From Paramoeba atlantica (lineage: Eukaryota; Protista; Discosea): 64,000 nucleotides of DNA. Position numbers and translations under genes: made by a program. Location of the stretch: positions 248,001 through 312,000 of the forward strand of contig CDRNVI010000177.1 in assembly GCA_977017575.1 (NCBI GenBank), in the 5' to 3' direction. The notes beneath the pieces were generated by a model that saw only the letters and a program-made list of their open reading frames with translations, did no database searches and was not told the DNA's origin. Positions 3,460 to 62,439 of this stretch are shown here, piece after piece; the stretch's first letter is position 1, and each line of letters opens with the position of its first letter.

Positions 3460-5192
3460 TTCAAGTGGAAGAAGGCAAACAACTCTCCACAAATATTTCC
3501 TAATAGTGTAAATCTTGATAACAAGTCAAACTATTGTATGAATAAACTAAAAACTGATTTGAGTGGAGAGGTGTGAGTTGGTGGTGGATAAGATTATATT
3601 GTGCTGTTCAAACCTGAAATTTTTCAGAATCCCCATACTTGTTTAATAAAGTCAGTGCAAATTTTCCAAGTTGATATAAAAAGTGTGAAAAAGAGTGAAT
3701 ATTTTTCACTCTTGTTGGAGCCTTCATCAATAAGTCAGATCCACCACCACAATCAAAACTATCATCATCAATAACCTGTTCAACTCAAGAAGACAGGTTT
3801 TTGATTAGAGCCTTTCAAAAAGCTTCTTCAACAAAATCACATTTATGAGCATGGCAACCAAGAATCTGAAGGATTTTTCCAGCCATTTGACTCAATTCTC
3901 CAACTGCTGCTGGGTTTGAAGGAGTATGATCCCCCATCACAGATTCAAAAGAAGAGAGGCTCAAAGAATCTAAAAAGGACTAAATTTTAGAGAATTTCTT
4001 TGTTAGATTTTGGAGACCATTTAAAAGAGAAAAAATATCCTTTACAATTGACAGGGCATCATGATCAACTGTTTCTCAAATACCTAAATTAACATGCCTA
4101 CCTTTGTCCTGGATCCCAACAGAAAGAAGATTTTGTCTTTGTGATAAACTTCCATCATGAGAGAGAGTTGAGGATTTTCATTCTTGGACTCATAGTAGTG
4201 CTTTTAATTTTGATTGGATGCTGCCTTCACAACAAATCTATTGGATTGTGGTTGGTGATGGAAGAGTAGGGTTTTTTTTCAAAAAAATTCAGAAAAATTC
4301 TCAAATTGCAGGAGAAATATTTCTCTGGGCCATATCAAGGGAAGAAAGAGAATTGCAATCTACCAGCACCAAGTTCAAGAGTTCTTACCTGCTCCTCCTC
4401 TTCTTCTTTTCCTTTTTCATCATTCTCCTCATCCTCCTCAGTCTTCTTTGCAAGCAAGGAGGTCATGAAATGAAATTTCCTCAGGAAGATCAATCAAATG
4501 ATGAACTTTTATCAACAAAAAGATCAAGGTCATCCAACACTTTGATGTGTGGTGGGCGGTGAATAAAATAACCACAAGCAGGTTGGCTTTCCTTGTTTCA
4601 ATCATGACCACTTCATAAACCACCAGAAAATTCCCCACCACTTCCACAAAAGCAGATTGCCCAACTTTATCAAAGAATTTGGGGGCCAATAAAGAAAAAC
4701 AACCATTTTCATCCAAAACAAAATGTTCAACAACAATTTACAATTTTTGGTGTTTCAATCACTGGTTCTAGGAGGTCAGTCCTTCTCTAATAATTTTTCA
4801 GTCTAAAGCCTTTTCTAATTGTCTTCATCATTTCTCCTCAAACAAGGAAGGAACAGCAATGAATGGTCCAGCATAAGTCATTGCTTTGTGGTCTGGTCCT
4901 TGACAATATTCACACTCAACCTGCACTACTTTCAAGAATCACTTCTTTATGGGTTTCATGAGCCTTTTTTTCAAAAAAAAAAAGATCAGTTTCAAGAAGA
5001 GGGTCTTTGAATTCAAAATCCAAAAGAATTTTGGGGATTGAAAGAAATATCTGCCTTAATCAGAGTTGTACAACAATTTTTTTGAGCAATTTCAAGGGCC
5101 AGGATGATTCAACTCCAAAACAAAAGAACAAAAAAAGAAAAAAGTCTTTGTCATGGCACTACCTGCACAACTTTGGGCATGTTTGCACTCTA
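3460..5192 (-). mobile_element. Pseudogenised DDE transposase with CxxH motif (hAT-like), copy 1
   Basis: Minus-strand segments SSFCWDPG, ETVDHDALSIVKDIFSLL, ESVMGDHTPSNPAAV...LGCHAHKCDFVEEAF*KAL and LLMKAPTRVKNIHSFSHFLYQLGK; homologous to the element at 26600-28669. Possible 5' end TAGAGTGCAAAC at 5192; no partner TIR found. Confidence 0.65.
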
Positions 5193-10673: not shown

Positions 10674-10792
10674 GGTCTTCAGCACTCGGGATTCGAATGT
10701 GGTCACCCACCATTCTACTAACCGAGCCCACAGCTGCTTAACTTCCGAGTTCTGATGGGATCGGGTGCTTTCAACTGGGTATGACCGAAGAC
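10674..10792 (-). rRNA. 5S: 5S rRNA (119 nt)
   Basis: GTCTTCGGTCATACCCAG...CCGATCCCATCAGAACTCGGAAGTTAAG...GCTGAAGACC followed by a T-rich terminator; identical to 19484-19602. Confidence 0.97.
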
Positions 10793-15965: not shown

Positions 15966-18545
15966 TTAATCAACTTCCTCAATCTTGGGTTCAGCAGAAG
16001 AACCAGATCCTCCTCCTGCATTTCCACCAGAACCAGAGAAACCTCCAGAACCAGAACCACCACCACCAGGGAATCCACCAGCTCCACCAGGGAATCCCCC
16101 AGCACCACCAGGGAATCCACCAGGCATACCTCCTCCTGGCATACCACCAGGCACACCACTGGGCATACCACCAGGCACACCACCCTCACCACCAGCTCCT
16201 TGGTAGATCTTGGAGAAGATTGGCATCACCTTCTCTTCCAATTCCTTCCTCCTGTGTTCAAACTCATCAACCTCAGCAAGTTGGTTTGTCTCCAACCACG
16301 AAATAGCCTCATCGACATGCTTGTTCACAGTCTGCTTGTCTTCCTCAGAGATAACAGCAGAAATTTTCTCATCACGAAGAGTTGATCACAAAGAGTAAGC
16401 ATAGTTCTCAAGTCCATTCTTCGCTTCAACCTTCTTCCGAGCTTCCTCATCTTCATCCTTTTTTTTTTTTTTTTTTTGAGGCAGACTTTATTCAATTAGT
16501 AGTTCTTAATCTAAGCCATTTGAATTATTTTTTTTTTTTTTTTGAGGCAGACTTTATTCAATTAGTAGTTCTTAATCTAAGCCATTTGAATTACATTAAA
16601 TTATGTTTGTTTTTAACCTCTAACAAGAGGTGAAGTTTTAAACTTCAGCTTAGTTCAGTCGGTCTTTATGCTGAACTTTAGAACTTCTGCAAGTTCAGGC
16701 TGGAGGATGCACATCAGAAGGGAGAATAATCCAAAGCTCCTTCCAAGGGAATTTATCCTCAACTTTTTAGCAGACAGGGCTGAGATGTAACCTGTTCCGA
16801 TTTTCACACTTCTTCAAGAGCTCCTCACTCCAATCAAATCACTCTACAGCACCAGAAAAATTTTCTATAATATCGAAAAACTGGGATTTGAACTCGCCCC
16901 CCGGGGTTGGACATAGTCGAATTTACGACTAAACTACGGGCACCAACCCTCCTCATCTTCATCCTTAAACTGTTCAGCATCCTTCACCATTCGATCAATA
17001 TCAGCTTGAGACAGTCGACCCTTATCATTTGTGATGGTAATTTGGTTCTGTTTTCCAGTAGACTTGTCCTTTGCAGAGACATTCAAAATACCATTCGCAT
17101 CAATATCAAAGGTAACCTCAATTTGAGGAACACCACGAGGAGCAGGGGGAATTCCAGTCAAATCAAATTTTCCAAGCAAGTTGTTGTCCTTGGTGAACTT
17201 TCTCTCACCCTCATAAACTTGGATGGTCACAGCAGGTTGGTTGTCAGAATAAGTGGTAAAACTGTTGGAAGCCTTCGTTGGAATGGTGGTGTTTCGATTA
17301 ATCAAGTTTGTCATCAAACCTCCAGCAGTCTCAATACCAAGAGAAAGTGGAGCAACATCCAACAAAAGTAAATCAGAAAGTCCTCCTTCAGTCACACCAG
17401 CTAAAATCGCAGCTTGAACAGCAGCTCCATAAGCAACAGCTTCGTCAGGATTGATGCTTTTGCACAACTCCTTTCCATTGAAGAACTCTTGCAAAAGAGA
17501 TTGGATCTTAGGAATATGAGTGGATCCTCCAACTAACACAACGTCGTGAATTTGTCCTTTGTCCATCTTTGAGTCACGCAACACCTTCTCAACTGGATCT
17601 AAAGTTCCACGGAATAAGTCTTGGTTCAATTCTTCAAATCGAGCACGAGTGATGGAAGTGTAGAAGTCAATTCCTTCAAAGAGAGAGTCTACTTCAATGG
17701 AAGCTTGAGCTTGAGAAGACAAAGTTCGCTTTGCACATTCACAAGCAGTTCTCAATTGTCTCATGGAGCGAGCATTGGAAGTCATATCCTTCTTCTGCTT
17801 CCTCTTGAACTCATTGGTAAAGTGGTTCACCATTTGATTGTCAAAATCTTCTCCTCCCAAGTGAGTATCACCAGCAGTTGCTTTCACTTCAAAAATCCCA
17901 TCTTCAATCGTCAAAAGAGACACATCAAAAGTACCACCTCCCAAATCAAAAATCAATACATTTCTCTCCGCTCCTTTCTTGTCCAAACCATAAGCAATCG
18001 CAGCAGCAGTGGGTTCGTTGATAATACGTCGAACAATTAAGCCAGCAATAACACCTGCATCTTTTGTAGCTTGCTGTTGAGAATCGTTAAAATAAGCAGG
18101 CACTGTAATCACCGCTTCTTTGACTTCCTTTCCAATGAAAGCTTCTGAAATCTCTTTCATCTTGATCAAAACCATCGAAGAAATCTCCTCAGGAGAAAAA
18201 GTCTTTTGTTCCGCTTTGTACTCAACTTGGATCATGGGTTTACTGGATTGGTTCACCACCTTGAATGGCCAATGCTTCATGTCAGATTGGGCAGCTGGGT
18301 CATCAAATCGTCGACCAATCGTTTCGCGTCGAAAATGGTGTTGTATGGATTCATAGCAACTTGGTTCTTGGCAGCATCTCCAATCAATCGTTCAGTGTCA
18401 GTAAACGTGACATAGGAAGGTGTTGTTCGATTTCCTTGATCGTTTGCGATAATTTCAACACGGTCATTCACCCAATAACCAACGCAGAGGAATATGTCGT
18501 TCCCAAATCGATCCCAACAATTGGACCATCAGTCGAGTTACTCAT
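15966..18545 (-). pseudogene. HSP70: Cytosolic Hsp70 pseudogene (EEVD C-terminus), disrupted by two frameshifts, a TGA and a SINE insertion
   Basis: ATG at 18545 ([19 protein letters not shown]), [24 protein letters not shown] and a GGMP-rich tail ending EEVD*. +2 slip near 18490, -4 slip near 18338, TGA at 16386-16388, SINE at 16459-16949. Confidence 0.97.
16459..16949 (-). mobile_element. tRNA-derived SINE copy 1 (with duplicated 3' 50 nt and two poly(A) tracts) inserted in Hsp70
   Basis: Head has A-box TAGTTTAGTCG and B-box GAGTTCAAATCC. 3' end AATAAAGTCTGCCTC-poly(A). TSD TCCTCATCTTCATCC at 16444-16458 and 16950-16964. Confidence 0.95.
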
Positions 18546-19483: not shown

Positions 19484-19602
19484 GTCTTCGGTCATACCCA
19501 GTTGAAAGCACCCGATCCCATCAGAACTCGGAAGTTAAGCAGCTGTGGGCTCGGTTAGTAGAATGGTGGGTGACCACATTCGAATCCCGAGTGCTGAAGA
19601 CC
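19484..19602 (+). rRNA. 5S: 5S rRNA (119 nt)
   Basis: Identical to the reverse complement of 10674-10792; followed by T-runs (Pol III terminator). Confidence 0.97.
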
Positions 19603-26003: not shown

Positions 26004-26149
26004 GTTTTTTTTTTTCTTCCTTTTTTTCTTTTTTTCTTTTTTTCTTTTTCCTTTTTTTCTTTTTTTCTTTTTCCTTTTTTCCTTTTTTTCTTTTTCCTTC
26101 TTTCTTTTCTTTTTTCTTTTCTTTTTCCTTCTTTCTTTTCTTTTTTTCT

Positions 26150-29100
26150 TTCAAAGGTGGTTTTTTCTCTTCTTTTTCTCTCTCTTTTTCTCTTCTCTTT
26201 TTTTTATTTTTTTTTTATGAACTTGGTCTGAACTGAACTGCTTCTTTGTTGCTCAAAGGTTTTTCTCTCTTTCTTTCTCTTTTCTTTTTTTCCTTTTTTT
26301 TCTTTTTTTTTCTTTTTTTTTTCTTTTTCTTTTTTCTTTTTTCTTTTTCTTTTTCTTTTCTATTTCTTTTTTTTTGAGCTTGGTCTCGCTCTTTTTTTCT
26401 CTTTTTTCCCCTTTTTTTCCTTTTTTTTTCCTTTTTTTTCCTTTCCTTTTTTCTTTCTTTTTTTCTCTTTTTCTTTTCTTTTCTTTTTCTTTTTCTTTTT
26501 TTCTTTTTTCTTCCTTTCCTTTTTCTTTTTCTTTTTCTTTTTTTTTTTAGAGCGAGCGACTTCGTCAATTTGCCCTTTCAAAGGTTTTTTCTCTTCTTTT
26601 AGCCTGGGCTCGTAGCAAGATTGCACACCAGCCTTTTTGAGGGTGCGAAAAGAAGAGGTCTTTTTGACCCTTGGATTTACCTCTTCTTTTTGGATTTGTG
26701 TTTGGGATTGGTCAAAATCAGTGAAAGTGCACTCGCAATTGGGTCCAGGTGTGGGGACGTAATAAAGTCGCCAGAGCAATGGTTGTCACTTGGTTCATTT
26801 TTCTGTTTCCATTCTTTTGGAATTTTTTCGAAAAAAATGGCCTCTGTTGAAGGAAGCGATATTTCTCTGCAACAAAAAGCATTATCAATTCGTTTTTCAG
26901 TTTTGTGAGTTTTGTCGCACTTCTAATAATCTTGCTCAAAAAGCATGAAGGTTTCTTCGTCAACATCCCTGGGAAGTTTGCACCTACCTCACGCTCACGG
27001 ATTGAGTCGAGTATTAATCGTAAGATTCGTGGTTGAGGTCTGGAACTCTGGCAGAAGAGGTGTGACTGGCGAACTCTTCGGGTCATGGGGGACCACACCA
27101 ATGTAAATCGGAGTGTGGTGGCAGGAATTATCGAAAGAGATTGAAAGTCCCCCCCTTGTGCAGCTGGGTTGTTTTGCCCACAAATGTGATTTGGTTGAAG
27201 AATCTTTTTTGAAGGCTTTGCGGAAAAAATCAAAAGAATGACTCTCTGCCCTCTCCCTCTTCTTCCTCTTGTGTTCCTCTTTCTCACCCCCTTCAACCAG
27301 TGCTCTCAGCGCTTCAAGTTTCCCCTGCTTTGGTTACCACCACAAGAGCCCTGTATCCTCACTTCAGATGAAGAAGGTGATGAGCCCTGGGAGGATGATA
27401 TTGAGCATATTTGTGTGGAGAAAGGACCTGAGCTTGGCTTCCCTCCAAAGACTGATGAACCTGAATATGGAATGAAGGCTCCTGGAAAAGACGATGACTT
27501 GAATACACACTCTGCAACTCAGTTTCTCTATCGAATCACAAAGGCATTATCGTTGACCTCAAAGGCAGGAAATCGCTATGGTCACTCTGAGACCTTTTCC
27601 CAGTGGTGCATAGTGAAAGGGTTTCAGTGTCATTTAACCCCCCCCCCTTCATTCAAATCGATTCTTGGTGTATTCTTAGAACGCATATGCCATCTACAAT
27701 GATCTGCATGTGGATCGGAATTTTCTTCAAGAATGTTTGGAGGACACTTGGACTCGCCAATTTCTCCTTGCCTCACTCTCATCTCCATTGATGTGCCACG
27801 AACTCTGATTGTTGGGGTTGTTTCATTATTTCTTTGGTTTTTTTTTTCATTTTCATTTTCATTTTCATTTTCATTTTCATTTTTAATTTCATTTTTATTT
27901 TTATTTTTATTTTTATTTTTATTTTTATTTTTATTTTTCTTTTTCTTTTTCTTTTTCTTTTTATTAATTTTTCTTTGAAATTCTTCACAGGCCCTCCTCT
28001 GACCTTTACCCTTTCGGTTCTTACAATTGAAGAGAGTGCTGCTCTTTGGAAAGAAGTTGAACAACATTTCATTGTTTTTACCACCGCCTCACTCACCCAT
28101 CCGCAACCTTCAACAACTTATCTTTTTCACAAATTGTGGGATTATGTTGGTTTTTTATTTGAGAAAAAAAATCCTCCCATTCAGGTCGCAAGTGATGGCT
28201 GAAAAAGAGAAAGTTTGGGAACGCTTGGAAGGGGGAATTTTGCTGAACTGGAGACACACAGAGATAACAAGGTCTTTCATTTGTGTTTGATCTCAGCACT
28301 GAAGGAAGTTCAAAAGGTAAGATTTCCTTTTTTTTTTCTCTTTTCTTCTTTCTTTTCTTTTACTAATTTTTAATTTTTTTGTTTCAGATTGGCAAAGAGA
28401 ACTTGGGGAATGGATCTCTTTCAAGTGTCCCTTCTTCCCTCTCTTCCCTCCCAGCTGATAATCTGGAACTGGAACTGGAACGTGTGTGTTTGCGAAAGTC
28501 AAGGAGAAGGATACCCATGTGAATCACTCTCTTGGTTGTTCTCCCACAATAAAATTCATTTCTTTTGACTCATTCTCTTTCCTTCTCCCAAAACTCCACA
28601 CAAAACCAGCGCCCTTCCAAAAAAAGTGGTGCGCAAAGTCAAAAAGACCCTTACTACTGGCCCAGGCTACCTCTTTTTTCTTTTTTCTTCTTTTCTTCTT
28701 TTTTCTTCTTTTTTCTTCTTTTTCTTTTCTTTTTCTTTTCTTTCTTTTTTCTTTCTTTTTTTTAAAACCTGATTATATTGAACTACCTTCTTGTCGATTG
28801 ACTCTTTCAAAAGTTTTTCTCTTTTCTTTTTCTCTTTTCTTTCTCTTTTCTTTCTTTCTTTCTTTTTCTTTTTCTTTCTTTCTTTCTCTTCTTTCCTTTT
28901 TCTTTTTTTTCTTTTCTTTTTCTTTTTCTTTTTCTTTTTTCTTTTCTTTTTTCTTTTTCTTTTTTCTTTTTTTTAAACCGGTGTGTGTCAAACTACTTCT
29001 CATCAATCTTTCAAAGGGTTTTTTCTTCCTCTTCCTCTTCTCTCTCTTCTCTCTTTTCTATTTCTCTTTTCTTTTTAAAACTTGGTTTGGGTCTTTATCA

Positions 29101-30503
29101 ATTTGCTCTTTCAGAAGTTTTTCTTTCTTCTTTTTTTTCTTTTCTTTTTCTTTTTCTTTTTCTTTTTCTTTTTTTCTTTTTTCTTTCTTTTCGTTTCTTC
29201 CTTTTTTCTTTTCTTTTCTTCTTTTTTTCTTTTCGTTCTTTTTCGTTCTTTTTCGTTCTTTTTCGTTCTTTTTCATTCTTTTTTCTTCTTTTTCCACCGC
29301 ATCCGATTTTTGAGAAAACGCGAATTTTAAAAATAAAGTTCAGGCCCATTTTTTTTTGGTAGCAATCCGGTGTTTAAAGGTGTCGTAAGCAACTTTTTGA
29401 TGGTTGTTAAGGTGGTAATTTTTTTTTTTTTTTTCAGATATTGGATTCACAAATCCAGCACCCATAATTCGAAATCCATTTTCATTTTTCAAAAACATAT
29501 GATAATATGTCGCTGCTCGAATACCAGCAACAGAGCCAGGACTGTGTTTCCAAATGTAACCCAACTTGGTAAGTCCAAAACTAGGTGTATTTTCCCATCC
29601 AAATCCTAAATAAAAGAGAAGAGAAAGCCCAATGTCTTTTTTGTCATGATGAAGAACTGTCCCATGAGCAATTGAGAGCCAGAATTCTTCAATCAAGCGG
29701 AAAATCTTTGTTGAAAGAGTCATTTGCTGTCCGGTTGCATCAAACTTTTTGTGAATGTCTTCATTGCATTCTCTCTGTTTATCAAATATTGGTGGGGGTG
29801 GGGAAGATGAAGATGTCTCTTTGATTGTTGAAGAAACCCATTTTTCGAAACGTAACTCAAAGATCGCATATCCTCCGAAAAGAGATTCCACAAATGGAAC
29901 AATCATATCATTCGTTTGGCCTGCTTGAACATATTCCCGAATCGGATTCACTTGCTTTGCATGAATTCCCATCGTTAACAAACACCATCCTCGACAATTT
30001 CTCTTTGTTTGATTAAATATAAAACATTGGAGGATTGAGAGCTCGTATACCTCCTCAGGAGATCCAACCGATTCCAACCGAAACATATCCTTCAAGCCAC
30101 TCTCCGATTTAAAATAAACATTTCCGGTCAATTCCTTCAATAAATTCTCATCTTTCAAAAGGTCTTGTTGGGTATTACAACCACCTGGATTCGCCAATTT
30201 TTGATAAAAATCTTCAGTGGCACCAGGAAAATGGGCCTTCCAGCTCGAATCTGAGAGGCGATCTAATGGGATCCTGTTCACATCATCAAAGAGAATTGTT
30301 GTTGTTTGAGAATTTTGTTTTGGAACTTCAAAAGATTTAAAAAGAACTGGAACTGGCTCTGCTGGTTTGATTTCAAAATAAGTTCTCATCAACGATAGTG
30401 CTTTTTCCCTGGTTTCCTTGTCAGAATAATGTGGTCATCCTGGTTTTGAATAATCCATCAGTTTTGGGAGTCCATGTGAACCACTTGCTTTCTTTCGACT
30501 CAT
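26150..30503 (-). pseudogene. Unknown protein (ATG 30503; TGA at 30435 and 29340) continuing into a Lys/Glu-rich tail with repeated EKxLKxQID-like motifs, interrupted by the hAT-like element
   Basis: MSRKKASG...SKPG*PHYS...LMRTYFE is in frame with the 350-aa ORF 29340-30392, and ORF 29058-29297 is in frame after the second TGA. The motif recurs on both sides of 26600-28669. Confidence 0.5.
26600..28669 (+). mobile_element. hAT-like DNA transposon (2070 bp) with 20-bp TIRs and an intron-containing, degenerate CxxH DDE transposase (copy 2)
   Basis: Left TAGCCTGGGCTCGTAGCAAG vs reverse complement of right TAGCCTGGGCCAGTAGTAAG (17/20). Shared subterminal GGTCTTTTTGAC. Protein VMGDHTNVN...LGCFAHKCDLVEESFLKAL...MKAP...NTHSATQFLY. 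TSD unclear in the T-rich flanks. Confidence 0.85.
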
Positions 30504-31276
30504 TCTTCCAACAATTTCAGAAACCTGGATATTGTGTGTGGAGTGGATTCAAAAAAAGATATTTATAAAAAATGAGAATAATAATAATAAAAAAAAGAGG
30601 AAGGAAAAAAAAGAGGAAGGAGAAAAAAGGAGAAAAAAAGAGAGAAAAAAAAGGAAGAAAAAAAAGGGAGAAAAAAGGGAGAAAAAAGAAAGAAAAAAAA
30701 AGAAAGAAAAAAAGGAAAGCAAGATGATCAAACGGAAACACAACCTTCTTTTCAAGCACTTCCCAAGACACTAAACTCTTATTTGTTTTTACAAGTTCTC
30801 TTACAGTCCAAAAACGAAAACGATCAAATAATAAAGGTGAAGGAGGAGAGTAGAAACTATCCTCATATGATGGCTCTGAAAGACGAACAGGAGGTAGCAA
30901 TAACATCGAGAGAGGAAAAGGGTTTTTTGGGGATAATGTCCACGAAGAAGAAGAGAAAGAATCATGGGTAATTGATTGACAGAGCAAAACATCCATTTCT
31001 AATCTCCTTCTTTTCTTTCTTTCTGATCGAATTTGTTTTTTTCTTTTGAGATTGAATTTGGTGAGCATTTTGAAAAAAAGAATCAAAAATTTGAAAGAAA
31101 GGAAAGAAAGTAGCAATTTTCGTATTGGATTCTTTTCAGATTACTTTTTTTCTTTTTTTTTATTAGAAAAATACAGCCAAAACGATTTTGTTCAAGCACT
31201 TTGTTTTTTTTTTGTTTTTTTTTTGCTTTTTGTTTTTTGTTTTTGTTTTTTGTTTTTTGTTTTTTGTTTTTCTCAA

Positions 31277-31885
31277 ATGTCTGAACAAACTGCTCACTCT
31301 GTTCGGACCCGAACTCCTTCTCGAAAACTCCTTGAGGCAGATGAATCTTTCTTTAAAAGAGGAAACTCTGTTCCATATTGCTACATCTCTCTTGAACCCT
31401 CATCACATCAAAGCGTAAACAAACCAAAAACTACAAACCAAAAGAAAAACCAAAAAGAAAAGTGTCCTCCTTGTGCTCTTTCTCTTTTGGAGAGCGATAT
31501 TGCAAGCAAGTTTTCATGTGATACAATTGTTGATTCTGTTGTTATTGAGCTTGATCGGATTGCCCATGATCTTTTTTCAAAAATTCCCTTGACTACTTGT
31601 AGTATGCGAATCTATCGAACAAAGGTCAATGCAGTTCTGTTTGAACTCCTCATCATCCCTCATCTTTTGAGAAGTGGTGGCGAACTTTCTCCTCACAAGA
31701 AGTCACTCTTCAACCCAATGACGAAAAAATTCAAAAATGGTCAAAAGATGTGGATTGTCACTCATAAAAAGTATCTGGTTGTATGGAGATTTTCTGCAAA
31801 TCTTGGAACTCTTGCAGTTCATTTTTTTGTTCAAGGATGGACAAAAGGAGGACTTCCAATCAACGATCTTTATATCTCAAATTAA
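31277..31885 (+). CDS. Hypothetical protein (202 aa), convergent with the RAG1-like gene
   Basis: Uninterrupted ORF of normal complexity (MSEQTAHSV...DLYISN*); ends 27 bp from the stop of the opposite gene. Confidence 0.65.
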   Translation: MSEQTAHSVRTRTPSRKLLEADESFFKRGNSVPYCYISLEPSSHQSVNKPKTTNQKKNQKEKCPPCALSLLESDIASKFSCDTIVDSVVIELDRIAHDLFSKIPLTTCSMRIYRTKVNAVLFELLIIPHLLRSGGELSPHKKSLFNPMTKKFKNGQKMWIVTHKKYLVVWRFSANLGTLAVHFFVQGWTKGGLPINDLYISN

Positions 31886-31912
31886 TAAATTTATTATTTC
31901 TTAAGATTGTGA

Positions 31913-34760
31913 TCAAAAACGTAATCTTTGTGGTTTTGCTTTTGTTTTTTCCTCTTCTTCCTCTTCTTCCTCCTCCTCTTCTTCCTCCTCCTCTTCTTCC
32001 TCCTCCTCTTCTTCCTCCTCCTCTTCTTCCTCCTCCTCTTCTTCTCCCTCTTCTTCATCATCAAAAGAAAATTCATCCTCTTCCTCTTCTTCTTCCTCTT
32101 CCTCTTCCTCCAACAAGAATTCATCTACCTCCTCATCCTCAAAGATCTCCTGTTCTAACTTCTCCATAGACTCTCCTGTCTCTTCCTCAGGTGGAACTAC
32201 ATAATTCTTTAAAATGAGTTCCCTTGTTGTTTGTGGAACTCCATTTTCACAAAAATCAATCATTTTCTTTTCAATTGCTTGACAACTTGGACATACTTTG
32301 TTTTCTTCCCCAACATCTTTCACAACACAAAAACAACATTTTCCCTTCTCAACAAACGATACACAATCCTTGATATTGTGCCCCCGAACAGATAGTTTCA
32401 CTGGACAAAGGAGGTGAGCCAAAAATCGAAAATCGTCGTATTTTGCGGCTGTCTCATACTTCATTGCGCCATAGCCACATTTTTTCACAAGTCGCTTTTG
32501 AATTAAATTTCGTAACTCTCCGCTTTGGCAACTACTGACAGCTGGTCCAACTCCTATTTGAAAAAGAATGAATGAAAGGAGATAATCAATAAAAAAAAAA
32601 AAGCAGAGGGGGGGAAAGAAAAGAAAGGAAAGCAAACCATAATTTTCATAGACTTTTTTGTAAAAATAAGGGCAGTCAAAACAAAGAGTATAAAACCATG
32701 GGATAATATTCGAGCTTGGAAATATTAATTTCATAATCTGAATAATTTGCTTTCCTGTTCTCGTCATTTCATCTAAAAGGTGTTGAACCTCACTTGGTTC
32801 CAAATCTTCCCCCTCATCATCAGTGAATTTCAAACATTCCCAAAAAGAGCTCATAAATTTAATTCACTGACAAATAAACGAAAAAGCTTGTAACTTCAAA
32901 TCGAACAAGGGTGGCAACTGGTGGCGAGGAAAACAGGAATAAATCGCTTCAACAACCAACTTGTGATAATTTTGCAATAGCCTTGTTGCTTGCTCTCCAA
33001 TCAACTGAAATTTCAGCTTCTTTCCTTCCTCAGTCTCAAGAATGTACTTCCATTCAATCGTCTTTGCAAAAGAGAGCAATCCAGAAACTCTTTTCATCCG
33101 CTCCACCATCTCTTGTAACATCTTTTTCCCAAATTCCTTATTGGAATTTGCAAACTCAACAATAGTAAGAAATAAGGCCAAAGTTGCAGAGCACTTGCCA
33201 TGAAGAGGACCATCTGGAGTAAAACGCTCACAAATTGCTAACAAAGGGGCTCCTTTTTGGCTATAATTCTCTTCCTGAATAAACTGTTGAAGGATCGCAT
33301 CTCTTGCATTTTCATCTATCGACTTATCTGAAATGATTTCTTGCCATTTCACTCGAACTTTTTCCCCCATTTCTTTCATTTTTGCCAATGTTCGCCTTCG
33401 TAACTTGTCTCGAGGAATGTCAGCATTGTTACGAGTTACATCAAGCCAATAAACAGAGAAATAAGTTGCAGAACAACCTTGATGACCAGCCACTTTACTT
33501 TGGTAAGAAAGGTCACCAATTGGAAGAAAATGGCAATGGTACAGATTTGTTTTGGTATTATCGATTTCACATGGAATTGAAACACCATTCTTTTCCAATG
33601 CTGCAATTCCAGGGTTTAAAACATTCTCACAAAGCCATTTGCTCACTTCATCATCTTCTTTGAAATTCCCACCACAGATCCAAGGCATCAATGTTGGTGA
33701 ACTTCCAACTCCAACAAAGTTCACAAATCGCAAATATGTATTTGTCATACCCATCTGAAAAATAGATTTTCAATTAAATCTTGTTTTGTCTCTTTTCCTC
33801 TATGCTCCCCCTCAAAAAAAAAGAAAATAATTTTTCTACTTACTTGTTTACTCTCCGGGGCACCATCAGTGAACATATTCACTAAAATTTGATATTTGCC
33901 TTCTTAAAAAAGGTGAGAGATTGTTGAACTTGGAGCATTGCTTTCAGTCTTTTCTCAACAACTTCTTCCAACTTTCAATAACCACCTTTAACCCCATACT
34001 CAGAAGGGAGTTCATGAAACCTATATGTTTATCTTTTGAGCAAATTGTTTTCATTGAGGAGGAGAAAAGAAGCTTATTACAAAAAAAAAAATAAATTTTT
34101 ACTTTGCTTCAAGCTCCAATGCGGACAACATTTTCTCCCTAAAATCCATCGCAGGCTTCGGAGCAGGAAGTTTTGGAAATGGAATTTCAAACTCTGGTGT
34201 TTTCAACTGAATTAGCTCCCCAGACAAAGGATCTAAGCCTCGCTGAAATATCAATTGCATAATTTGGATTTTTCGGTAACCCATGTCATTCATCATCATG
34301 TTCACAAACTGTGCTTGTTTCAAATTGTCAGATTTCTCAAGGTTTTGAAAGTCTATTTATTAAATTTTTAAGAAATCAGAATCCTTCAAAAACACACACA
34401 CAAAAAAAAAAATTAACCTTTTTGAACAGCTTTCTTCACAACTTGCTTCCCAACGGGCAGACAAATGACTTCTTCAATCAGTCTTTTTTGAAACCTTGGA
34501 CTTGAACTTTTCAAAAGTTCTGAGAATACTTTTTCGAAAGGTTTATCCTCTTTAATCCTCGTTTCTTCATCATCTTCATTACAAAGAACCTTTGAAGAGA
34601 TAAACCACTTTAAACTTTGTAATCTCTTCTGTTTTGCTCTTGATTTGAGATGAAAAAAAGCTCTCCTTTGCCTTTGCCGTTTTTTTTCACAAATAGCAGA
34701 AGTGTTGATGATTGGAAGTTGTTCTATTTTTGTTTGTAAGAAAAATTGAAAAATTGTCAT
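31913..34760 (-). mobile_element. RAG1-core/Transib-like DDE transposase gene with four apparent GT-AG introns, pseudogenised by in-frame stops
   Basis: Collinear motifs: MFTDG (D at 33865), SSPTLMPWICGGNFKEDD..LNP, IGDLSYQSKVAG (D at 33512), PDGPLHG, LIGEQATRLL and IIPWFYTLCFDCP...YGVGPAVSSCQSGELRN (E at 32516), paralleling RAG1 DGMG, PNSELCCKPLCL..DESD, YDEKLVREVEG, IDALH, MNGNFARKLM and TNYFHKTLAHVP...GAWASEGNESGN. Confidence 0.75.
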
Positions 34761-35045
34761 TTTAAAAGAAAGTTAAACCAGGTTGGTTTGGTCCTTTTGA
34801 CTTTTTTGATCTTTTTGATCTCTTTCCAAAAATCTTTCTGGTGAGTCTGTGAGATTTGGGTGTGCCGATTTTCAAAAAATTGCCCGATCTATTTGCTCTT
34901 AGACTTTAGAATATGGAGAAAAAAGTAAAACCAAAATGGAAAAGGACATCTTCTCTTTAAAGGGGAGATATTGGCTTGGCAGTTTGACCAACACTTTTTT
35001 AACACTTTTCAACATCTCTCCCACAAAAGTTGTTTTTTTGGTTCT

Positions 35046-36650
35046 TCAAAAATACATTGTTTCAAAGAACATCAAAAAACGAATCAAAATCAAAAAAACA
35101 AACCTTGAAAAGACTTCAAACAAAGACCAAAAAAGTGGACGGCAGAAACGAAGAGAAGCGCGAAAGAAAAACACGAGAAAACACAAGAACGCAAATGCCA
35201 TCCAAAATAGGGACTCAAAAAAAGTGCGCGATTTTTGAAAAATCAAATGTGGTGAAAGGAGGTTCTTTTGACCCATCAAAGACAACCGCACTTTTTTGTG
35301 CCAATCTGGCCCGCTTATCAAAAGATTTCCTGCTGCTGATTGGTGAACTTTCTTTGCATTGACAACCAACAACAACATTGTAACCTCCCATAACTTTTCT
35401 GTTGCTGTCCAGTCATATTTTCTGTGGGTTGAGAGAGCTCCCATTGTATGCTGATCTGCAACATCCACAAAATCCATCACCTCACTCTTTGTGGTTCGAG
35501 CAAGGGGGCGCATTTCTTCAAGCTTTTGATAAGTCGCTTGGGTTTCCAATGTATCATCATCCAACCAACATTTCAACTTCTTTTTCAACTTGTGTGGTAG
35601 AGTAACAAGTTGAGAGTGTACAGAGTTTTCGATTTTTCGATTGAAAGACATTTGCAAGAAAAGGAACCTGTCACATGGGACCTGTCACATTTAGAAAAAA
35701 AAAAAGAAAAAAAAAAAAGAAAAAAAGAAGAAAATAAACCTTCTCATTTTCTTTCAGACCATCAACTTCACCATAAAGAGTTTGACAATCACCATGTCGG
35801 GTGATTCGGCTACAAAGGTCATTTTTAAAGAACATCGAGGGTCTGCTCTGGTTGCAAGAGAAAAGACTGTGCTTCCCTTGTTTTGCCAACCCTTCCGTCG
35901 CCACGGACACTCCCAAAATAGGAATCAACAACAACAAGAGCTCCTTCAGGAAGTTGATTCAACATACAAAGAAGGGTTTCATGCGTTGGTTCGGACACCC
36001 CATCTCAATGATACTGAGAGAAAGCAACAAAATAGCCAGAAAAATCAACAAGAGACCAATTTTTAATGCCATGTGGATGAGGGTTCCTCATTATGAACAC
36101 ATGATGAGGATTCTTTCTTCCTTTGTGAGGAACAAGGGTTTCATCCACAACACCTGTATTTGCTGGGATCCAGATCGCACCCATAATTTTAGCGACAAAA
36201 GAACCACCCTCACTCTCAAATGTTTCTTCTGGTTGTTTATCTCTGCCAACCTTTTCTTCTCTGTTCCCAATTTTCAATAAATAAAAACTGGAATCAAAAG
36301 AAAACAAAATGACCTGACTCGGTTGATGATGTTCGGAAGTTTTTGGAGATAATCAGGGGGGAGGGCTGTTTCGATCGCACCTTCCACCACTTTGCATTTT
36401 TCTTGAAGGTCAATGTGCAGACGACCAGGCTTAATTGTTGGCATGTGGAGCTCTTTCTTCTGTGATGTGATCTTGAGCCGAATTTGTTCTTGCACAGCGG
36501 AAAAAACAGTGCTGAATTTGACCAGACCCTATTGTGGACAACTTTTCTTTCCTTTTTTTTTCGTGTGGTTTTCCTGCTTTCTTCGCCACAGAATTCCTTG
36601 TTTTCCGTTGGAAGGTTTTCGTGTTCGATTTTTGCCCTTTTAGTGCTCAA
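35046..36650 (-). mobile_element. piggyBac-family (DDE_Tnp_1_7-like) transposase pseudogene
   Basis: VVDETLVPHKGR...PHGIKNWSLVDFSGYF, VVVDSYFGSV, KLCTLST and MDFVDVADQH...W motifs; TGA at 36005, frameshifts and one probable intron. TIR/TTAA ends not located. Confidence 0.85.
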
Positions 36651-58789: not shown

Positions 58790-60230
58790 TCAGAAAAGTC
58801 ACTTTTTCAGTGATTGACTTGGGCAATCAAAAATAACTGGAGAGGGACAATAAGAATTAACTAATTTTTTATAACAAGCCAGAGCAAAGTTGATCAAACA
58901 ATTATGTTGGTCTTTATCTTCATAGAAGGGGTGAGAGAGAGCAGCAAAAGTCTGTTTACACCAACCATACAGTGACTCAACTTTTCCTCTTACAAATGCA
59001 ATTGCTTCATTTTTCTCTTGATCCTCAGCACTCAATGAATGGGGAACTCTCTTTCCATGGATTATTCAAGGCCTTCCAGCGTTTGACTTGTTTGTGACCA
59101 ACACCAACTTATCGAAAAATTTTGTTGCTGCTCAAAAGTGGTTGTCTTTTTTTTTTTGAGACAGACTTTATTCAATTAGTAGTTCTTAATCTAAGCCATT
59201 TGAATTACATTAAATTATGTTTGTTTTTAACCTCTAACGAGAGGTGAAGTTTAACTTAGTTCAGTTGGTCTTTATGCTGAACTTTAGAACTTCTGCAAGT
59301 TCAGGCTGGAGAATGCACATCAGAAGGGAGAATAATCCAAAGCTCCTTCCAAGGGAATTTATCCTCAACTTTTTAGCAGACAGGGCTGAGATGTAACCTG
59401 TTCTGATTTTCACACTTCTTCAAGAGCTCCTCACTCCAATCAAATCACTCTACAGCACCAGAAAAATTTTCTATAATATTGAAAAACTGGGATTTGAACT
59501 CACCCCCCTGAGGTTGGACATAGTCGAATTTATGGCTAAACTATGGGCACCAACCCACTCGAAAGTGGTTGTCTGCAATGATGTGTGGTCCTAGAAAAGA
59601 GGTCATCAAGTCAATTCGCATAAAAAATAGTGATATCTCCATCAGATTCTTTTGGTGAATGGATCCCACTAACCCATTCAGCCCCACCTTTTGCATTGTG
59701 AAGTGTCACCCACCACCAACCAGGAGCTTTAAGTTTGTGTGAGTACCATTTTGCCCTCCACTTCTTGCAAACTGTTTGTTGGGCCCTTTAATTTTAAAAT
59801 CAGATGAATCCATCCATAAACAGTCAGATTGGCATGGTGGTGGTCATTCAGTTCTTTGGGCCATTCTCTGCAAATGAGAAAGGGTGCTTGGGACCAAGAT
59901 TGTTTTTGTCCACTTTAGCAACTCAAAGCAAACAACTTGAACTGTTGTGTTGGATTGCTTTTTGGCCCATTGGGAGCCAATTGTGCACCTTTTTTCAGAG
60001 TTTGCCCATCCCAACCGCAAATAGATCCTTGTACATTACAAGATGATACACAGACACAGCAAAACCAGAAGGTCTCTGTTCACTCCAAAGCTTTGGTTTT
60101 TGAGATTCCAAAAAATTTAGAATCTCCTTCAAAGTCTCTTCTCCCAGCTTCTCTTTCACAGCAAATATGATATCTTTCTTTCTCAACCCTTCAACCCCCA
60201 CCATTGGTGAAAGAGTACAATTCATTTTAT
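58790..60230 (-). mobile_element. ISL2EU/PIF-Harbinger-like (DDE_Tnp_4/IS5-type) transposase pseudogene interrupted by SINE copy 2
   Basis: CLWMDSSDFKIKG, WYSHKLKAPG, HSPKESDG, IIADNHF and VRGKVESLYGWCKQTFAAL, across frameshifts and stops. Confidence 0.75.
59147..59557 (-). mobile_element. tRNA-derived SINE copy 2 (CpG-eroded)
   Basis: Homologous to 16528-16949; TSD CTC(A/G)AAAGTGGTTGTCT at 59131-59147 and 59558-59574. Confidence 0.95.
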
Positions 60231-62013: not shown

Positions 62014-62439
62014 TTTTTTTTTTTTTTTTTTGAGGCAGACTTTATTCAATTAGTAGTTCTTAATCTAAGCCATTTGAATTACATTAAATTATGTTTGTTT
62101 TTAACCTCTAACAAGAGGTGAAGTTTTAAACTTCAGCTTAGTTCAGTTGGTCTTTATGCTGAACTTTAGAACTTCTGCAAGTTCAGGCTGGAGGATGCAC
62201 ATCAGAAGGGAGAATAATCCAAAGCTCCTTCCAAGGGAATTTATCCTCAACTTTTTAGCAGACAGGGCTGAGATGTAACCTGTTCTGATTTTCACACTTC
62301 TTCAAAAGCTCCTCACTCCAATCAAATCACTCTACAGCACCAGAAAAATTTTCTATAATATCGAAAAACTGGGATTTGAACTCGCCCCCCCGAGGTTGGA
62401 CAGAGTCGAATTTACGACTAAACTACGGGCACCAACCCA
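62014..62439 (-). mobile_element. tRNA-derived SINE copy 3
   Basis: TSD TCAGTTCCCCCTTCC at 61999-62013 and 62440-62454; the empty site is visible in the paralog near 54355-54369. Confidence 0.96.

Follow-up and report, generated by a model that had tools for sequence, protein, structure and literature searches.

A decayed transposon copy encoding a RAG1-like transposase in Paramoeba atlantica, probably from an unnamed lineage of the CMCT clade

The enzyme RAG1 assembles the genes of antibodies, and its origin has been traced to Transib-like transposons, which are known mainly from animals. In the stretch of 64,000 nucleotides from the protist Paramoeba atlantica analyzed in this study (GenBank assembly GCA_977017575.1, contig CDRNVI010000177.1, positions 248,001 to 312,000 of the forward strand, hereafter the window), an earlier note made from the sequence had recognized an intron-containing RAG1/Transib-like transposase gene on the minus strand. 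Our analysis finds that this reading was right with respect to the fold of the protein, whereas the proposed kinship with Transib and a zinc finger resembling that of ProtoRAG are wrong or at least unproven. The gene is probably part of a dead copy of a cut-and-paste transposon of about 6 kb, which would encode a transposase of around 850 residues in six coding exons and which we assign to an unnamed and rare lineage of the CACTA/EnSpm-Mirage-Chapaev-Transib (CMCT) clade rather than to the bona fide Transib elements. The window locus itself is a pseudogene within a dead copy of the element.

The fold of the protein was approached with its best relative (P0003), an uninterrupted open reading frame (ORF) of 657 residues located on the metagenome contig L001 with a first exon upstream. 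An AlphaFold model of P0003 obtained from a shallow family alignment shows a mean predicted local distance difference test score (pLDDT) of 53 overall and is confident at residues 270-500. In a Foldseek search of this model against the PDB, RAG1 chains occupied the first 14 places (E 0.012, probability 1.0), with HzTransib and amphioxus RAGL found lower in the list. Realignment of the Foldseek list with VIA-align resulted in a Z of 13.0 to RAG1 (6xnz_C, model residues 319-511 against chain residues 790-963) and the first 31 rows were all RAG1, RAGL or Transib, with the next fold at 8.3. The same proteins emerged from an unbiased alignment against 48,161 representative chains, where the top six rows were BbRAGL (12.4), HzTransib (10.5) and four RAG1 entries (9.3-10.3), followed at 8.3 and below by unrelated helical proteins and the P element transposase. 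The structural matches extend over residues ~233-525 of P0003 only and comprise 150-230 aligned residues. Complementary results were obtained in language-model searches, which for the whole protein returned RAG1_RNase_H, ZnC2 and ZnH2 clusters at 0.92-0.95 and for residues 95-262 alone RAG1_RNase_H clusters at 0.95 with 177 shared features, whereas the CACTA-type Transposase_21 clusters ranked lower for the same region (0.93, 149 shared features). A RAG1-type fold is well supported by the model for the C-terminal catalytic half of the protein and probable for its N-terminal half. Foldseek, VIA-align and language-model searches support the protein as a DDE transposase that, among known folds, is closest to those of RAG1, RAGL and Transib. 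The best matches were neither to CACTA or Plavaka transposases nor to a non-transposase fold, either of which would have refuted the reading of the earlier note by its own criterion.

The three acidic residues of the predicted active site are encoded where they had been placed before, with GAT at 33867-33865, GAC at 33514-33512 and GAG at 32518-32516, and they are conserved throughout the family except in decayed copies. Since the aligned ranges end at residues 510/511 of the model and 962/963 of the chain, the family Glu (E510 in P0003, corresponding to window positions 32518-32516) falls on E962 of RAG1. At their other end, the ranges begin at residues 233 and 720, from which D220 of P0003 extrapolates to residue 707/708 of RAG1, in proximity to D708. 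The first Asp (D134 in P0003) is contained in the RNase H half, whose model is unusable, and its equivalence to D600 of RAG1 is suggested by the language-model match to RAG1_RNase_H.

At the level of sequence, only 17 related proteins, most of them fragments, were identified when 1.84 billion representatives were scanned exhaustively with HMMER, and the family is found at 31-51% identity in unrelated metagenome contigs. In DNA runs of the organism it is present at high copy number, as about 1,900 pieces of contigs match this stretch with an identity of 85-100%. No transposase family in Pfam matched the pieces from the window, five relatives or a 592-residue ORF of the copy L010. There was equally no match to PF02992 (Transposase_21/TnpD), and the RAG1 families of Pfam remained without a match even at E values up to 10 for any member tested. 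A sequence search of the PDB with either P0003 alone or the family profile returned chance matches that included no RAG1 or Transib chain, a word-seeded homology search with the family alignment recovered P0003 itself and nothing else, and a scan of metagenome loci with the query A2 was blank. The KDZ and Plavaka families were considered as candidates and rejected, as neither found support from a profile.

A pronounced feature that distinguishes the protein from RAG1 concerns the zinc ligands. The canonical CxxC motif following the second Asp and the Hx3-4H motif preceding the Glu are missing from the corresponding positions of the alignment in the window family, which instead contains SVYW and C....Y, and the replacement of CxxC by SVYW described for the window holds for the whole window family. 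Only P0003 has retained three of the four ligands. A conserved set of His and Cys residues nearby (H/C/C/C in GHQGC ... TLC.DC) might, as judged from the sequence, constitute a substitute zinc site. A C-terminal motif of the form C...GHNxxxC had been compared to the tail finger of ProtoRAG, but its final Cys is a private change from CGT to TGT (encoding Arg in the copies L005, L010 and L012) and the motif is missing from P0003 and P0016. We have therefore rejected a ProtoRAG-like finger, which would rest on a mutated residue. What is conserved is a pair of CxxC motifs (CxxC...CxxC, 32338-32282) located just downstream.

The gene is longer than first drawn and contains six coding exons (34888-31913) preceded by a 5' leader exon (Table 1). 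The multi-exon coding frame on the minus strand is real, with long and open pieces between 34760 and 31913, and both introns described previously were confirmed. These comprise the 89-nt intron at 33843-33755 (CAA|GTAAGT...CAG|ATG) and an 84-nt intron at 32637-32554, which is bounded by GT..AG and in frame. At both positions the coding sequence is uninterrupted in P0003, P0016, P0009 and the gene of the distant relative L002, and in the alignment of relatives L001 likewise lacks an intron at 33843-33755. In contrast, the ATG at 34760, which had been taken as start, falls within a further intron (34778-34724) that is spliced out in a probable RNA contig. The coding frame extends upstream of 34760 via exon 34888-34779 and likely starts at 34869-34867, which is ATC in the window and ATG in the copies L005 and L012. 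The contig, 842 nt in length, originates from the run X6, which was labelled as RNA by guess, and it contains GT-AG joints on the minus strand at 35103/34889, 34778/34724 and a third near 34417/34353. It is about 90% identical to the window in one exon and then continues in unlike sequence, which indicates that it derives from another copy or subfamily and thus does not demonstrate expression of the window copy. Below 34126 the contig extends by 164 letters that are unmatched to the window, and some transcripts with this type of 5' end consequently belong to a different subfamily or follow another pattern of splicing. The six-exon model was applied to two other copies. In L005 it yields a single frame across 855 codons containing six stops, and in L012, where exon 5 contains a single 2-nt indel, the inferred frame is free of stops both before and after it, with the spliced frame open as far as the indel and a 480-residue ORF extending from just past it to the end. 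The preservation of the frame in both copies provides strong support for all five coding splice pairs. For exon 5, the alignment to P0003 by tblastn covers 527 columns (E 1.4e-90).

The boundaries of the element were defined by comparison with close paralogues within a single ENA assembly (ERZ24900291), which were fetched via the downstream TET-like ORF. The window alone had revealed neither a matching inverted repeat nor a second copy, and the ends and their inverted repeats were set from five independent sets of flanks. The inverted ends have a length of about 24 nt and read CACCGCAT...ATGCGGTG. The 5' end, CACCGCATTCGATTTTTCAAAAAT, and the 3' end, in reverse complement CACCGCATCCGATTTTTGAGAAAA, agree at 20 of 24 positions if the less mutated copies are used. 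Terminal inverted repeats starting with CAC, as had been predicted, are thus present (CACCGCATTCGATTTTT... at the 5' end compared to CACCGCATCCGATTTTT... at the 3' end in reverse complement). A target duplication of 5 bp, which had been expected alongside, is found in none of the copies (L005, L007, L012 and the window-type locus). Instead, the element is flanked by 3-bp repeats in L005 (AGT|AGT) and L007 (AAA|AAA). Two such matches at four sites would occur by chance with a probability below about 1% by a rough estimate, and a 3-bp target duplication is likely but not proven. The flank pair TTT|GAA is common to the window, L006, L010 and L011, which identifies these four as one insertion within a larger duplicated block.

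Table 1. Features of the element, with positions given in the window.
Feature	Position	Strand	Remark
Whole transposon copy, 5,960 bp	29295..35254	-	Homology with L003, L005, L007 and L012 begins and ends exactly here; flanks unrelated
5' terminal inverted repeat	35231..35254	-	Starts CACCAC (CACCGC in less mutated copies)
5' leader exon, 3' end	35104..35139	-	X6 contig joins 35104 to 34888 over a GT..AG gap
Coding exon 1	34779..34888	-	Spliced in X6 contig; frame and start Met from sister copies
Coding exon 2, basic N-terminal region	34418..34723	-	Joint 34779|34723 in X6 contig; homologous to exon 1 of L001
Coding exon 3	34103..34352	-	AG acceptor 34354-34353, GT donor 34102-34101; frame kept in L005
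Coding exon 4	33844..34020	-	First catalytic Asp, TGA 33977-33975, frameshift; tblastn to P0018
Coding exon 5	32638..33754	-	Second Asp, SVYW, helical insertion domain, TGA 32866-32864
Coding exon 6	31913..32553	-	Catalytic Glu, CxxC...CxxC, acidic tract, conserved basic C-terminus
Convergent partner gene	31277..31885	+	Conserved tail-to-tail after transposase gene in L001, L002 and L004
Probable TET/JBP-like dioxygenase gene	29340..30503	-	Language-model Tet_JBP clusters; same strand as transposase, downstream
3' terminal inverted repeat	29295..29318	-	Ends ...GATGCGGTG

That the copy in the window is dead, as had been concluded before, is evident from the loss of its start codon, two changes from CGA to TGA and one frameshift in the transposase gene. 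The stop at 33977-33975 is CGA (Arg) in L005, L006, L010, L011 and L012, and the one at 32866-32864 is CGA (Arg) in L010 and L012. Whereas both of these stops, which had already been noticed, are real, no TAA was seen in the true frame. The frameshift is located in exon 4, which measures 177 nt compared to 184 nt in other copies. It appears that the copy was inactivated mainly by C-to-T changes, which would account for the two stops in the transposase and a premature stop of the same kind (CGA to TGA, 30437-30435) in the TET-like gene, and that the lost start codon, the frameshift and a deletion of 76 nt in the partner gene (at 31704/31705, relative to L003 and L005) have added to the damage. 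The direction of the changes is pronounced, as a comparison of the window with L003 yields 198 differences of the type C>T or G>A, compared to 13 in the reverse direction and seven transversions. In the same comparison, 53% of CpG sites are hit, compared to 15-23% in other contexts. The frequency of changes at CpG is about threefold that in other contexts, yet the majority of changes are located outside CpG. Changes private to a single copy were compared between the window, L003, L005, L006, L007, L011 and L012 and range from 12 to 328 per copy. They consist nearly exclusively of C>T or G>A, which account for 318 of the 328 private changes of L007 and for 36 of the 49 in the window, and L012 contains a total of 12. 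Collectively, the pattern looks like a process related to repeat-induced point mutation (RIP) or to the action of a deaminase, on top of the decay of methylated CpG.

The element contains two further genes (Table 1). The partner gene shares 49% identity with the window in L004, 35% in L001 and 33% in L002, and its conserved part spans only about 150 residues. It has no homologues in Pfam, the PDB or wider searches and by sequence no similarity to RAG2. The downstream gene was matched to Tet_JBP clusters at 0.97, which make up 48 of its 60 language-model matches, and it contains an HxD...H pattern, which in the intact copy P0032 reads LHRD...YH. In TET/JBP dioxygenases, a pattern of this type provides the iron site of a double-stranded beta-helix fold. 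There was no match to this gene in Pfam (PF12851 included) or by sequence in the PDB. The 324-residue gene located downstream in L002 is not TET-like.

With respect to classification, the CMCT clade has been defined by CA..TG termini, a target duplication of 2-5 bp and a DDE transposase remotely similar to RAG1 or EnSpm (Kojima 2025, PMC12730594), and the element described here shows these features, the duplication at two of four insertions. Since three defining features of Transib, namely a 5-bp duplication, the zinc ligands and a match to a RAG1 or Transib profile, all fail, and since the CACTA profile fails as well, we have filed it as an unnamed CMCT lineage. From the original description as RAG1/Transib-like, it is thus the fold that stands, whereas membership in the Transib/RAG lineage is not supported, given a duplication that is either 3 bp or absent, the missing zinc ligands and the silence of the RAG1 and Transib profiles. 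Several observations weigh against our assignment. C(2)C and H(3-4)H motifs are reported to be common to all CMCT lineages (Kojima 2025, PMC12730594), but the window family does not contain them where they would be expected from the alignment. The protein has no tie at the level of sequence to any transposase family, as both Pfam and PDB searches were blank, even with the family profile. The model of P0003 is poor outside its confident region, and a separate AlphaFold model of the N-terminal RNase H half is, with a pLDDT of 43, unusable, so that both Asp assignments rest on conservation, spacing, the extrapolation of aligned ranges and the language-model match. According to VIA-align's own note, chance matches between helical bundles can reach a Z around 13. 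The 3-bp duplication is found in only two of four independent insertions, as neither L012 (ATG|TGT) nor the window-type locus shows one, and the TET assignment relies on one language-model search and a short motif.

Three other explanations have to be considered. In the first place, the element might be a true member of the Transib/RAG group, placed either within Transib or as its sister, whose duplication has secondarily changed to 3 bp and whose zinc site was lost. Such a relationship would be in line with RAG1, RAGL and HzTransib as top structural and language-model neighbours instead of CACTA-type clusters, with element ends that begin with CAC, and with a convergent second gene placed tail-to-tail with the transposase gene, akin to the RAG2L gene of ProtoRAG. 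We consider it unlikely in light of the fact that no copy carries a 5-bp duplication, that the canonical C2/H2 ligands are absent and that the RAG1 models of Pfam are silent even at an E of 10. Moreover, RAG1 and Transib are to our knowledge the sole CMCT proteins whose structures have been solved, and any CMCT enzyme would thus match them first. For the fungal ESTA elements, a separate CMCT lineage, similarity to RAG1 was also detected by HHpred (PMC12730594).

It is conceivable, although we deem it the less probable case, that the element is a very divergent relative of EnSpm/CACTA, similar to the TET-carrying EnSpm families of rust fungi, which were classed by their CAC..GTG termini and 3-bp duplications (PMC12730594). 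The termini of the present element equally conform to 5'-CAC..GTG-3', 3-bp duplications are seen at two of four insertions, a TET-like cargo gene is present and Transposase_21 clusters are contained among the language-model neighbours of the N-terminal half (0.93). In contrast, there is no Pfam match to Transposase_21, Plavaka or any other CACTA family, the RAG1 clusters outrank Transposase_21 in shared features (177 compared to 149), the termini read CACCG and not CACTA, and the duplication was found in two copies only. Finally, the gene could encode no transposase at all but a repeated host or orphan protein with a helical domain that resembles RAG1 by chance. The missing sequence homology to any transposase, the restriction of confident modelling to the helical part and the warning of the tool concerning Z values up to about 13 in helical folds would be compatible with this scenario. 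We regard it as highly improbable given that the gene resides within a unit which is bounded by terminal inverted repeats and recurs, flanked by 3-bp repeats, at several loci unrelated to each other, that conservation is seen in the alignment columns of the D, D and E residues, that all six top rows of the unbiased scan belong to the RAG family and that the non-helical N-terminal half independently returns the RNase H domain of RAG1 in the language-model search. An unnamed CMCT lineage remains in our opinion the probable assignment.

The relationship to known systems can be described on this basis. With RAG1, amphioxus RAGL and HzTransib (6xnz, 6b40, 6pqn and others) the family shares the fold from just past the second Asp to the Glu, with Z values of 10-13, the order D...D...E with a long helical insertion and element ends starting with CAC. 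It differs from these proteins by the lack of detectable sequence similarity and of CxxC and HxxxxH ligands at canonical positions, by a longer N-terminal region and by the CxxC...CxxC pair near the C-terminus, and the element differs by its extra genes and a target duplication that is 3 bp or absent but never 5 bp. A second point of reference is ProtoRAG, in which RAG1L and RAG2L are arranged tail-to-tail between inverted repeats. A RAG1-fold transposase gene and a tail-to-tail second gene inside inverted repeats are likewise found in the present element, whereas the conserved part of its partner is confined to about 150 residues without sequence similarity to RAG2 and the GHNxxxC finger is not conserved. 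A third resemblance is found in fungi, where DNA transposons carrying TET/JBP genes include the three CMCT-clade lineages EnSpm, ESTA and Plavaka (Kojima 2025, PMC12730594). The element resembles these in its CA..TG-type termini, its probable short duplication, its remotely RAG1-like transposase and its TET-like cargo, and C-to-T mutation of repeats is likewise seen in the present genome. In contrast to the fungal elements, the C(2)C and H(3-4)H motifs are missing from the transposase described here, the divergence of the TET-like protein prevents its recognition by Pfam and a conserved convergent partner gene is present. A full-text search of the literature, whose coverage is incomplete, recovered no publication in which TET/JBP is connected to elements of the Transib type outside fungi.

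We read the protein as a DDE transposase with an RNase H-like core, in which a large helical insertion with the fold seen in RAG1, RAGL and Transib separates the second Asp from the Glu. By analogy to these enzymes, an intact protein would bind the inverted ends of the element, nick the DNA and excise the element by means of a metal site formed by the D-D-E residues, and reinsert it, apparently with a cut staggered by 3 bp. The TET/JBP-type dioxygenase could plausibly counter silencing by cytosine methylation. A role of the partner gene is equally inferred.

Additional observations concern the surroundings of the element and its relatives. At least three further contigs of ERZ24900291 (L006 2361-14043, L010 and L011) contain the block of the window that holds the element and its >10 kb surroundings (26008-36492), with an identity of 93-97% and the same flanks. 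Adjoining the 5' end of the element is a pseudogene of a piggyBac-type transposase on the minus strand (35255-36492, e.g. 36008-36307; PF13843, E 7e-5), into which the element was seemingly inserted. The 3' flank consists of a GAAAAA-type simple repeat and not of the rest of the piggyBac gene, and the insertion site was probably rearranged after the insertion. No empty target sites were detected among the fetched loci. In L003 (7552-8793), the element is interrupted by insertions of a short repeat that is found three times in the window (16459-16949, 59147-59564 and 62014-62437), which suggests that this repeat moved after the L003 copy of the transposon was made. The contig L002 contains a perfect inverted repeat of 136 nt (1-136 and 3476-3611) with units of about 42 nt, one arm being located at the start of the contig and the other just past the partner gene, which reflects either long subterminal repeats or a fold-back of the assembly. 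The window as a whole has a G+C content of about 35%. It contains a complete ribosomal DNA (rDNA) unit with a long small-subunit gene (40304-42406, 2,103 nt), a 5.8S gene and a large-subunit gene (43092-47135), two 5S genes (10674-10792 and 19484-19602) and six tRNA genes. The rDNA, 5S and tRNA genes lie in 64 kb that are densely packed with the debris of transposons.

The value of our findings lies in the family and not in the dead locus of the window. This family is exceedingly rare in public data, it lacks the zinc ligands that are said to unite its clade and it is always accompanied by an orphan partner gene. RAG1-fold transposases of distant eukaryotes are helpful for dating the fold and for showing which of its features are ancestral, such as the zinc site, the partner subunit and the length of the duplication. 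The probable TET/JBP-like gene extends the theme of anti-methylation enzymes carried by transposons beyond fungi, which is the only setting described in the literature searched. In a more speculative and rather doubtful scenario, the family would represent an ancient and independent RAG1-fold lineage without a canonical zinc site, which requires the partner encoded tail-to-tail and which would still be active in this organism, as suggested by the copy L012 that is a single 2-nt indel away from an open frame. If true, a RAG1-type enzyme paired to an accessory subunit would predate the RAG lineage of animals and be more widespread than it, and a living system outside animals would be at hand for testing this.

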